A DNA stretch of 63,701 nucleotides, filler included, from Octopus bimaculoides (taxonomy: Eukaryota): the NCBI RefSeq assembly GCF_001194135.2. It is 4 parts of 4 records of this genome, joined end to end, with 100 filler letters (N's around TTAATTAATTAA, not from the genome) between each part and the next. Parts side by side here need not be neighbours in the genome. Positions count along the whole stretch, not along the records: positions 1 to 26,877 come from NC_069008.1; 3 more parts are not named here. One strand, written 5' to 3'. Positions within the stretch are counted from its first letter, which is position 1. Every line of letters starts with the position of its first letter. Below, piece after piece: positions 960 to 8,760 of the stretch. The position numbers and the translations under genes were made by a program. The notes under the pieces are model-generated. The model had not been told where the DNA came from. It saw nothing but the letters and a program-made list of their open reading frames with translations, and ran no database searches.

Positions 960-1058
960 GTTGTTAAACTGAAGCAAGTTGAACACACATTAAATGAAAA
1001 ACGAATCTTGCAAGCAGTTTCTTTTCCCTTTCTCGTCAGTCTTGAATATCATTATAAG
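960..1058 (+). CDS. PRKACA: PKA catalytic subunit exon (vertebrate exon 4 equivalent): [33 protein letters not shown]
   Basis: Flanked by cag| and |gtaagt; 99 nt, phase 0-0; near-identical to the PKA-C alphaC region. Upstream exons (N-terminus, Gly-rich loop) are not in the window. Confidence 0.97.
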
Positions 1059-1623: not shown

Positions 1624-1706
1624 GACAATTCCAATCTTTATATGGTTCTAGAGTTTGTGACTGGCGGAGAGATGTTTTCTCACCTGAGACGGATAGGAAG
1701 GTTTAG
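1624..1706 (+). CDS. PRKACA: PKA-C exon 5 equivalent: [27 protein letters not shown](S)
   Basis: ttgcag| and |gtgagt; 83 nt, phase 0-2; hinge region. Not in the ORF track; translated by hand. Confidence 0.97.
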
Positions 1707-3745: not shown

Positions 3746-4005
3746 GATCGGAAGAGCCAAACCTGCCTGGCCTGCTAATCAACTGATCGGTTAATCTATA
3801 CAACAGATCAATGTTATAGATCAATAGTGAATGCCATAACTGGGAGCATCAAGTTCCATTGATTCACCTCTCTTCCCCCCACTTATGAAGTTCTATCAGT
3901 AACTATGACCCCTTCCTCCTCAGGGGTCACCTCACACTAGATGTTCAGGTCAGGGTGTAGGAGAGGTTTGTTGTTGTATAACTTGTTTCATTTCTTCTGC
4001 TTCAG

Positions 4006-4132
4006 TGAACCTCACTCCAGATTTTATGCGGCTCAAATCGTGTTGGCATTTGAGTATCTGCACTACTTGGATATCATTTACAGAGATTTAAAACCTGAGA
4101 ATTTGCTTATTGATTCATCTGGTTACTTGAAA
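4006..4132 (+). CDS. PRKACA: PKA-C exon 6A: (S)[42 protein letters not shown]
   Basis: ttcag| and |gtaagt; 127 nt, phase 2-0; contains the YRDLKPEN catalytic loop. Confidence 0.96.
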
Positions 4133-4567
4133 GTAAGTAAAGCCAGCAGTTGTTGGCAGACTTGAAAGTTTTGTAGAGCAAGATGAAGAGGAGGAGGAGG
4201 AGGAGGAAGAAGAAGAACGAAAAGAAGGAAAAGCAAAAAATGATGTCGATTGATTTCTTTCTCAGAATTGTTTTAAACCATAACAAATAGCAGACCCCCT
4301 AAAGTCTTGTTCTCCCATCGATCCCTTGCTTTTCAATATACAATTTCTTTCCCCCTTACCCTACCTTTATCATTTCATTCCCCAATAATTCATATGTCTC
4401 CTCTCCTGACCCCCTTTCTACCACTGCACTGTAAATTAAATCCCACCACTTCCACTTGTCAGTTTTTATTTGGTCAGGTGTGTGTGTGTGTGTGAGAGAC
4501 AGCAGAGGTCATCACAGACAACTCAAGTTTGGTCAACAATAGAAGACTGTGGATTGCTTGAGCTATA

Positions 4568-4759
4568 ACTGTGTTGTATCAGCGATTAGCTCTAATACGT
4601 CTGTGGATTTGGTGTGGATCGGGTATTAACTAGGATACATCTCTTAATCTAATGTGCATCAGGGATTCACTATAATACATCTGCTGATCTGGTGTGGATC
4701 AGGGATCAACTATGACACATCTGTTGATCTGTTGTGGATCAGGGATCAGCTACAATCCA
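4568..4759. repeat. About 40-bp tandem repeat, 4-5 diverged units
   Basis: Consensus atctggtgtggatcagggatcaactatgacacatctgttg. Confidence 0.8.
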
Positions 4760-5072
4760 GTTCTTTTCCCATTCAGTTTAATCCCGAGATACGCTCCCTT
4801 CCAACCCTTAAAATACTTTATGTAATATTTTCTGAAATGAATTAATCCAAGATTATCCTAATCCTGTGTTTAGACCAATTCTGAGAAATGATGATGCCTG
4901 CATCATTTTATTTTCTTCTTTTTTATTTAATCATTATTTTCTTGTTTTTTTCTTTCTTTTTCACAGCTGTTCAACCTTGTGCGACCGAATGTGACTTTGC
5001 TGTTACCTGGTCTTTTTGTTGTTTGTCTCTATCATCGTAACCCATTTGCCCTTTTGCCCTTTTTCTCTACAG

Positions 5073-5199
5073 TGAGCCGCATTCCCGATTCTATGCCGCA
5101 CAAATCGTGTTGGTGTTGGAATATTTACATCACTTGGATATAATGTATCGCGACCTCAAACCTGAGAACTTGCTCATAGACTATCTGGGCTATTTGAAG
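5073..5199 (+). CDS. PRKACA: PKA-C exon 6B (alternative copy): (S)[42 protein letters not shown]
   Basis: ctctacag| and |gtattg; same length (127 nt) and phases as 6A; open frame with intact YRDLKPEN; 36/42 aa identical to 6A. Confidence 0.94.
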
Positions 5200-5926
5200 G
5201 TATTGTGTCTCACCTCGCTCTCATCTTGTCATGGGGATGCTTCTTAGGACACCCGCCACAGCGCCCACCACCCAAGAAAAAAAAAAAATAAGCAAAGACA
5301 GTAGCAGCAGCTACTATCTTTCTCTCTCTCTCTCTATCTATCTATCTATATATACGCATATGTGTGTATATACATACATGTATATATATCTATATGAACA
5401 TATATATATCTATATGAACATATATATATCTATATGAACATATATATATATATGTATGTATAATGTATTTCTACATACATTCATGTGTGTGTATATAGCC
5501 TGCATCTCTGCAATACACCCGCACAAAATGGTGGGATTTTTGCATTTCATGCTTTCACGTCGTTGCCATGGTGATGGGGCTCCAACATTCAATTAGCAAA
5601 TTGAATCTCTTTTCCTTCTTTTTTTCTCCCTTTTATATTTTTTTCCCCCTTTTTTAATTACATCTGTTCATCTCTCATATATATAAATATATATATATGC
5701 ACCTCCATGTTACCCTTTTTAAAATCTTTAAACATTCCATTCTTTGTCTCCCCCCCACTCCTAAACCAGTCAATATTCACTGAACAGTTCTTCCCCCACC
5801 CCCAGTTCATTTCACGCTTCTCTGCATCGCTGAACTCACATGCATACTATACACACACCACACATTATATAATGTGTGTTTGTATGTATATATTTATGCG
5901 TATGTATGTGTGTATATATATGTGTA

Positions 5927-8199: not shown

Positions 8200-8760
8200 T
8201 CATTAGTAAAGTACCTGTCTTATTACTAAACTGTAACTCGTTAGTCATGTAGTGTTCTTTAGTAAATTAGTTGTCTCATTTCTAAACTGCTTTGTTACTA
8301 AACTGTGTCATGATGTTTATAATCCAACTGTCTCATTAGTAAACTGTAACTCATTAGTCAATTAACTGTGACGTGTTAATTAAAGTGTGTCTCGTTAGTA
8401 AACTGTAGCTCATTAGTCAATTAAGTGTGACTTGTTAATTAAAATGTGTCTCGTTAGTAAACTGTAGCTCATTAGGCAATTAACTGTGACTTGTTAACTA
8501 AAGTGTTTCTCGTTAGTAAACGAGGTTTCATTAGTGAACCAGCTTGCCTCATGACAAAACTGTCTCATTAGTATCTTAGATATGACTTCTTATAAATTAT
8601 CTCATTAGTAAACAGTATCTCGTTAGTAAACAAGCTGTCTTTCATAAGTGAACTAGTTTGTCTCATTTACTAATCTAGCTGAACCTCGTTACTAAGATGA
8701 TCTCAATTGTTAATAATTTAACTGTGCCTCGTTAATGAACTAACTCTGTCCTAACGACAC
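8200..8760. repeat. Degenerate tandem repeat built on ctc(a/g)ttagtaaac
   Basis: More than 10 recurrences, with about 59-bp higher-order units around 8330-8530. Confidence 0.75.

Follow-up and report, generated by a model that had tools for sequence, protein, structure and literature searches.

Tandem exon 6 copies in the protein kinase A catalytic subunit gene of Octopus bimaculoides and their likely orthology to the Aplysia isoform switch

Gene structure at the locus

The window analyzed here, a 63,701-nucleotide (nt) stretch of Octopus bimaculoides DNA (GCF_001194135.2) joined from parts of four records with filler between them, carries in its first part (positions 1 to 26,877, from NC_069008.1) the gene encoding the catalytic subunit of protein kinase A (PKA-C), in which the exon that encodes the catalytic loop occurs as two tandem copies, here called 6A and 6B. 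The gene extends over 123.7 kb in GCA_001194135.2, and the window therefore holds its 3' part, with exons equivalent to vertebrate exons 4 to 10 on the plus strand. We mapped these exons by tblastn with human PKA C-alpha and by inspection of the splice sites, which gave the following arrangement.

960-1058, plus strand: exon 4 (vertebrate-equivalent), 99 nt, found by tblastn against human PKA C-alpha, with AG/GT boundaries.
1624-1706, plus strand: exon 5, 83 nt, its terminal AG being the first two bases of a Ser codon.
4006-4132, plus strand: exon 6A, 127 nt, the ancestral-type copy, with donor AAA/GTAAGT.
4133-5072, plus strand: intron between 6A and 6B, 940 nt, with a pyrimidine-rich stretch upstream of 6B.
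5073-5199, plus strand: exon 6B, 127 nt, the derived copy, beginning with TGA, with donor AAG/GTATTG.
14836-14931, plus strand: exon 7, 96 nt, the common acceptor for 6A or 6B after a 9.6-kb intron.
15533-15655, plus strand: exon 8, 123 nt.
15980-16144, plus strand: exon 9, 165 nt.
17955-18080, plus strand: exon 10, the last coding exon, with the stop codon and an upstream AG only.

All PKA-C exons are bounded by AG/GT apart from the terminal one. The translated exons contain YRDLKPEN and end in ...EFADF, placing the product among PKA catalytic subunits, which are recognized by the core motifs YRDLKPEN, DFG, and APE, an FxxF tail at the C terminus, and near-full identity to PKA C-alpha; the protein aligned without gaps to solved PKA C-alpha (1CTP chain E, residues 79-350; phmmer, E = 5e-169). 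The product that contains 6B is identical to O. bimaculoides PKA-C isoform X2 in 272/272 residues (100% identity). Across bilaterian PKA-C genes, exons 2-10 keep their lengths and the introns their phases, although the structure of the mollusc gene was still unknown in 2013 (PMC3625193). Octopus exons 4-9, for which lengths and AG/GT boundaries were all checked, fit this conserved bilaterian structure. Their lengths of 99, 83, 127, 96, 123, and 165 nt equal those of exons 4-9 of vertebrate PRKACA/PRKACB, and the likeness to the vertebrate genes extends to the gapless protein alignment. Vertebrates, however, have a single exon 6, and diversified PKA-C by gene duplication and alternative first exons rather than by an internal exon of the kinase core.

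Anatomy and reading frame of the exon pair

A preliminary description of this locus had proposed two probably mutually exclusive exons giving two PKA kinase cores from one gene, and its anatomical claims were borne out to the nucleotide. Both copies are 127 nt long, carry a pyrimidine tract and AG on the 5' side and GT on the 3' side, and retain an intact YRDLKPEN; both are entered in phase 2, where the AG that ends exon 5 and the first base of exon 6 make up a Ser codon, and left in phase 0. The splice partners that had been named for them, 1706 and 14836, coincide with the tblastn exon map. A scripted count found 35 differences over the 127 nt (72% nucleotide and 86% amino acid identity) and, among the 42 codons, 14 identical, 22 synonymous, and 6 replacement codons (6A>6B: A>V, F>L, Y>H, I>M, S>Y, and S>L), reproducing exactly the 35, 22, and 6 of the earlier hand count. 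The two copies matched human PKA C-alpha in tblastn at E = 1e-20 and 2e-18, a similarity therefore far beyond chance, and no third copy was found in the O. bimaculoides piece (tblastn, E<=10). In their equal length, shared phase, homology, and complete splice sites, 6A and 6B form a pair of tandem homologous exons.

Either copy on its own preserves the reading frame, as splicing of exons 5-6A-7 or 5-6B-7 yields an open coding sequence (CDS) of 819 nt. Splicing of 5-6A-6B-7 gives a 946-nt CDS in which the first codon of 6B, TGA, is read as an in-frame stop, and direct splicing of exon 5 to exon 7 leads to a stop after one codon. Joint inclusion and joint skipping are therefore both nonproductive by frame, as the preliminary description had anticipated. 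For comparison with other animals, we scanned genomic PKA-C loci for AG-127 nt-GT exons encoding YRDLKPEN, and found the copies listed here.

Octopus sinensis, cephalopod (L003): exon 6 copies starting at 39382 and 40497.
Sepia pharaonis, cephalopod (L005): exon 6 copies starting at 67259 and 67742.
Aplysia californica, gastropod (L001): exon 6 copies starting at 52201 and 53170.
Capitella teleta, annelid (L002): exon 6 copies starting at 8209, 8447, and 8980.
Watersipora subatra, bryozoan (L004): exon 6 copies starting at 18199 and 18733.
Branchiostoma lanceolatum, amphioxus (L008): one exon 6 copy.
Homarus americanus, lobster (L009): one exon 6 copy.

The second copy begins with TGA in 5/6 species. 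The octopus pair is comparable to other exon pairs separated by frame and nonsense-mediated decay (NMD), in that its members are adjacent, homologous, of equal length not divisible by 3, and in the same phases, with double inclusion leading to a stop; it differs from them in being unusually old and well conserved, and in that the second copy opens with the stop codon. Within the intron that separates the two copies, a 40-nt unit is tandemly repeated 4.2 times at 4578-4746 (75% matches), a region whose identity to O. sinensis, taken in windows of 50 nt, is 84-100%.

In the gapless alignment to solved PKA C-alpha, exon 6 corresponds to mature PKA C residues 140-181, so that the two copies supply alternatives for this segment, as had been proposed. 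It covers helix alphaE, strand beta6, the catalytic loop YRDLKPEN, and strands beta7-beta8, and the differences between 6A and 6B fall at residues 153, 154, and 159 in helix alphaE, at 163 in the strand before YRD, and at 176 and 177. An AlphaFold2 model of one octopus isoform (P0006) has low confidence (mean predicted local distance difference test score, pLDDT, of 46.7), and its secondary-structure string alone was used; it places 153, 154, and 159 in a helix and 176 and 177 in a loop between two short strands. Alignment and model both agree with the earlier placement of the differences in helix alphaE and the beta7-beta8 region. The two kinases, as predicted from the exons, are otherwise identical and differ at these six positions, and the functional effect would probably be a subtle change in kinetics or in interaction with the regulatory subunit. 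Differences of this kind between the Aplysia forms of PKA-C were reportedly described by Cheley and Bayley in 1991.

Isoforms on record

Isoform records were sought by exact-sequence look-up, including sequences in which the exons had been swapped. For O. bimaculoides, RefSeq holds two 6A forms, XP_014777146.1 (X1) and XP_014777153.1 (X7), and two 6B forms, XP_014777148.1 (X2) and XP_014777154.1 (X8); isoform X2 with 6A swapped in is X1, and different N termini accompany this choice of exon, X1/X2 against X7/X8, the latter being 351-residue forms. The preliminary description had observed that 6B is absent from the open reading frame (ORF) track, which holds, as 6A lies within a 74-residue ORF and 6B only in a 46-residue ORF below the default listing threshold; its added expectation that annotation would easily miss the exon does not hold, given the two RefSeq 6B forms.

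The closest known system is Aplysia, where the cDNA-derived protein CAA45014 carries B, and where swapping in the genomic A exon gives CAA45015, residue for residue. Going by its title, the 1988 report of Beushausen et al. is said to deal with Aplysia PKA catalytic subunit isoforms produced by alternative cassettes, and the title of Beushausen et al. 1992 (PNAS 89:1641) indicates that alternative N termini are combined with exon choice in Aplysia. The swap together with the 1988 title confirms the part of the earlier argument that was given as established for Aplysia, and the proposed resemblance of 6B to an Aplysia form is likewise real, since CAA45014 carries the segment that had been named. 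This Aplysia isoform work (Beushausen et al. 1988, Neuron 1:853) appears in the reference list of PMC9531652. Octopus and Aplysia are alike in the gene, the 42-codon segment, and the A-then-B order of the copies, and their B exons differ in 2/42 residues; octopus combines exon choice with alternative N termini, as the 1992 title indicates for Aplysia, and exon 6 is all that separates the two Aplysia proteins on deposit. They are unlike in their A exons, octopus A being 8 residues from Aplysia A and much closer than the gastropod exon to the ancestral, arthropod-like one. The shared segment and order, and the grouping of octopus B with Aplysia B described below, are those of an orthologue of the Aplysia cassette switch.

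Transcribed evidence for the B form comes also from the cuttlefish S. pharaonis, where two Logan contigs (L006 and L007, from SRR30931880 and SRR30931881) encode an intron-less 351-residue B-type protein. In L006, exons 5, 6B, and 7 directly abut one another, each an exact nucleotide match to the genomic locus, and L007 holds the exact Sepia 6B exon, the sole exon checked there. Sepia proteins of both A and B type are on record (CAE1178607/CAE1178602), the A-type one also from assemblies of this kind, as are isoforms X1 (A) and X2 (B) of W. subatra in RefSeq, and two 351-residue proteins of the annelid Owenia fusiformis (P0076 and P0141) encoded on one contig differ only at residues 142-178. 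B is also carried by a cDNA-derived protein of Lymnaea. Single-inclusion products of both kinds are on record in octopus, cuttlefish, Aplysia, a bryozoan, and an annelid; within the protein cluster examined, O. sinensis is represented by a 6A protein only. Several deposited gene models are faulty at this pair: three bivalve models (P0003, P0004, and P0005) wrongly concatenate A and B, fully or partly and in A-then-B order, and a model from Acanthosepion pharaonis (P0011) has four residues, GYLK, after 6A that are apparently the end of 6B.

Splice sites, conserved intron sequence, and a proposed mechanism

The donor of 6A is AAA/GTAAGT in 6/6 species, with 7/9 matches to the U1-complementary consensus, and those of 6B are AAG/GTATTG, GTATGG, GTATGA, or GTAGTA (GTAKKR), with 5-6/9 matches; all six species share this asymmetry, in which 6A has the strong donor and 6B the weaker one. 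The intron between the copies, 940 nt in O. bimaculoides, ranges from 356 to 988 nt in the other species. The two octopuses are too close (89% overall) for footprinting, and the introns of octopus and cuttlefish are almost entirely unalignable except for short exon-adjacent stretches, about 60 nt at 5200-5262, and the block at 5499-5593.

5200-5262, plus strand: conserved intron segment just after the 6B donor, with a G-run (CATGGGGATGC), matched by blastn and nhmmer to Sepia L005 67869-67930.
5499-5593, plus strand: conserved 95-nt intronic block, ~300 nt downstream of 6B, near-invariant between Octopus and Sepia, a candidate splicing-regulatory element.

The 95-nt block aligns to Sepia with 89% identity over 101 nt (blastn; nhmmer E = 4e-28) and was not found by nhmmer in the Aplysia, Capitella, or Watersipora loci. 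A search of 3800-5800 against Rfam gave no match to it, the only hits being sub-threshold, microsatellite-like microRNA models at 5344-5500. A regulatory role for these conserved intronic sequences is conjecture on our part.

We consider a mechanism that couples a frame and NMD safeguard to splice-site competition to be the moderately probable explanation for how the two copies are kept apart. The reading frame would be the main enforcer of exclusivity, and the choice itself would be made by competition between the strong, invariant GTAAGT donor of 6A and the weaker donor of 6B, the latter of which would need the aid of trans-acting factors that bind conserved intron sequence downstream of it, which in cephalopods would be 5200-5262 and 5499-5593.

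Another conceivable mechanism, which we regard as unlikely at this locus, is competing RNA base-pairing between docking and selector sequences, as in insect Dscam or 14-3-3 xi. Like Drosophila Dscam exon 6 and 14-3-3 xi, the PKA-C pair consists of homologous alternative exons in tandem with a conserved element in the intron nearby, and the 95-nt block comes after the last variable exon, a position taken by docking sites in some clusters; unlike those systems, however, PKA-C has only two or three variants, and no complementary selector was detected in it. Duplexes that the block could form with 6A and 6B, or with the flanks of these exons, were no better than shuffles in three cephalopods (absolute z below 1 with 80-nt flanks, a coarse test), the block folded on itself no better than shuffles on either strand (z = 0.4), and no positionally conserved inverted repeats occurred in five species. 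Moreover, the block is absent outside cephalopods, and with two 127-nt exons the frame alone removes double and null products. Duplexes of the block with the whole upstream region were rejected, as they were dominated by low-complexity sequence. The same fate met a minimum free energy fold of the region from 6B to the block, which was significant in the two octopuses (z of about -8) but not in Sepia (z of -1.2), the octopus signal coming from a TA/TG microsatellite.

Phylogenetic depth and exon evolution

The A-then-B order is found in every tandem set, the set in Capitella consisting of a divergent extra copy, A, and B, and in Aplysia the A exon lies 842 nt upstream of the B exon. Proteins with B-type exons are further known from a chiton, Lottia, Haliotis, pulmonates, many bivalves, Owenia, and Lamellibrachia. 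Of these, Lottia and Lamellibrachia came from profile searching with B-type proteins, which brought in no new phylum, and a protein search with the 59-residue B-exon region alone returned short fragments without taxonomic signal. In the brachiopod Lingula, isoform X5 is A-type, and the exon of the nemertean Tubulanus is intermediate (TFEYLHHFDII). The preliminary description had supposed a conserved molluscan switch; conserved it is, but the restriction to molluscs falls with the A-then-B pairs in the annelid and bryozoan genomes.

An exon tree across phyla, which had been set as a check, was built by neighbor joining with 500 bootstraps from 42 exon peptides and 42 columns. The B exons form a clade in 379/500 bootstraps, and O. 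bimaculoides B groups with Aplysia B (2 amino acid differences) rather than with O. bimaculoides A (6 differences). Leu154 and Met163 are common to all B exons and occur in no sampled non-B exon. Within each species, synonymous sites between A and B are saturated (proportion of synonymous differences, pS, 0.8-1.0) at a nonsynonymous divergence (dN) of 0.07-0.18; for octopus 6A and 6B, dN is about 0.09 with saturated synonymous sites, as expected from the purifying selection on both copies that had been proposed. Between phyla, orthologous B exons are 1-3 residues apart and orthologous A exons 5-8, and a single replacement, P>L, is seen in the 6B copy of O. sinensis. Only 2 residues separate octopus 6A from the one exon 6 of the lobster, and this near identity makes A the ancestral type and B the derived and more tightly constrained one.

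The simplest reading is that one duplication occurred before molluscs, annelids, and bryozoans diverged. The opposite case, in which molluscs, annelids, and bryozoans duplicated the exon independently and converged on the B signature, strikes us as very unlikely. Exon duplications do recur in this gene, as in the third exon 6 of Capitella and the possible second exon 5 and divergent last exon of the lobster, and the bootstrap value of the B clade is only 76%. Yet the A-then-B order holds in every genome, the same donor asymmetry (GTAAGT vs GTAKKR) is found throughout, and V153, L154, H159, and M163 recur in the B exons of all three phyla, L154 and M163 being the two residues absent from the non-B exons sampled. 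No paper describing the phylogenetic depth of the exon pair was found in the literature searched, which is an incomplete collection. The third Capitella copy (L002 8209-8335) is divergent, lies 111 nt upstream of A, and has an intact frame and AG/GT; no protein containing it was found in the collection with the one N terminus tried. A cDNA-derived Perinereis protein (P0045) has another unusual exon 6.

Weighing the exon switch

Taken together, we conclude that 6A and 6B are, with high probability, a mutually exclusive exon pair orthologous to the Aplysia PKA-C switch. Several points weigh against this conclusion or against parts of the mechanism proposed for it. The 6A and 6B isoforms of O. 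bimaculoides are RefSeq model proteins, and the use of 6B in this species rests on those models and on strong purifying selection. The fate of messages containing 6A+6B or lacking exon 6, which would be truncated and presumably removed by NMD, is deduced from the stop codon. Support for the B clade is moderate (76% of bootstraps), as the alignment offers no more than 42 columns. Finally, the conserved intronic blocks are cephalopod-specific at the sequence level and therefore cannot be the ancestral mechanism.

If 6B were instead a silent or decaying pseudo-exon, 6A alone would be in use and the RefSeq 6B isoforms would be prediction artifacts; the presence of 6A protein only for O. sinensis in the cluster examined and the P>L change in the 6B of that species speak for this. 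We regard this as extremely unlikely. The frame and AG/GT of 6B are intact, and 6B stands only 1-3 residues from annelid and bryozoan B despite saturated synonymous sites, which is incompatible with neutral decay over >500 million years (Myr); spliced 5-6B-7 transcripts exist in Sepia, and Aplysia and Lymnaea cDNA-derived proteins carry B. Steric hindrance and U2/U12 incompatibility, both classical mechanisms for two-exon clusters, deserve almost no credence here, the former because the intron between the copies (940 nt, and 356-988 nt elsewhere) is far above the ~60-nt limit, the latter because all four sites are U2-type GT-AG and no 6B donor fits the U12 consensus (GTATCCTT).

Other features of the gene and its relatives

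Past the last coding exon, 18081-26877 contains no notable ORF, and assembly gaps (N runs) lie at 18208-18570, 18976-19084, 20535-20551, 23000-23293, and 25045-25447 beside TA/TG/CT microsatellites. In three octopus isoforms (P0006, P0122, and P0123), 14 extra residues (FPYKLSKGKRPNFQ) that the 351-residue forms lack stand between ...DHPSH and NTACLDDF, suggesting that the gene has another small cassette exon in its 5' part, upstream of the window. In the lobster locus, a second, partial exon-5-like segment lies upstream at L009 523-582 and a divergent second last-exon-like segment (37% identity) at L009 10889-11011; from these sequences, other exons of the PKA-C gene may have been duplicated in arthropods. 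An amphioxus gene model (P0007) contains an exon-7-like stretch twice, but the fetched locus (L008) has one exon 7, and the duplication may be an artifact of assembly or model.

Significance

The exon switch as such is already known: its publication in Aplysia dates from 1988, and RefSeq has for years listed the two octopus isoforms. New here are the lophotrochozoan age of the pair, its unusually constrained derived copy, and the cephalopod-specific conserved intronic block. In the Aplysia model of synaptic plasticity the central kinase is PKA, and the other molluscs in which learning is studied are the cephalopods. Octopus retains the two kinase cores known from Aplysia, which would make the Aplysia biochemistry transferable, and quantification of octopus PKA-C transcripts or protein must separate 6A from 6B.

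We further propose, with confidence evenly divided, that the switch is more than 500 Myr old and was inherited from the ancestor of molluscs, annelids, and bryozoans, with three copies in Capitella and none of the switch in the sampled arthropod and chordate loci, that the near-invariance of B reflects a specific partner or property of the B-type core, and that the 95-nt block may control the choice in cephalopods. A choice of catalytic-core exon would then have persisted from roughly the Cambrian onward in three phyla or more, the derived copy being held more tightly, and this preservation together with the tighter constraint on B argues that the two cores are not interchangeable. The six variable positions offer a clean comparative system for what the B core does differently and, if the proposal is true, the near-invariant B exon would imply a specific partner or property of the B-type core in lophotrochozoans.

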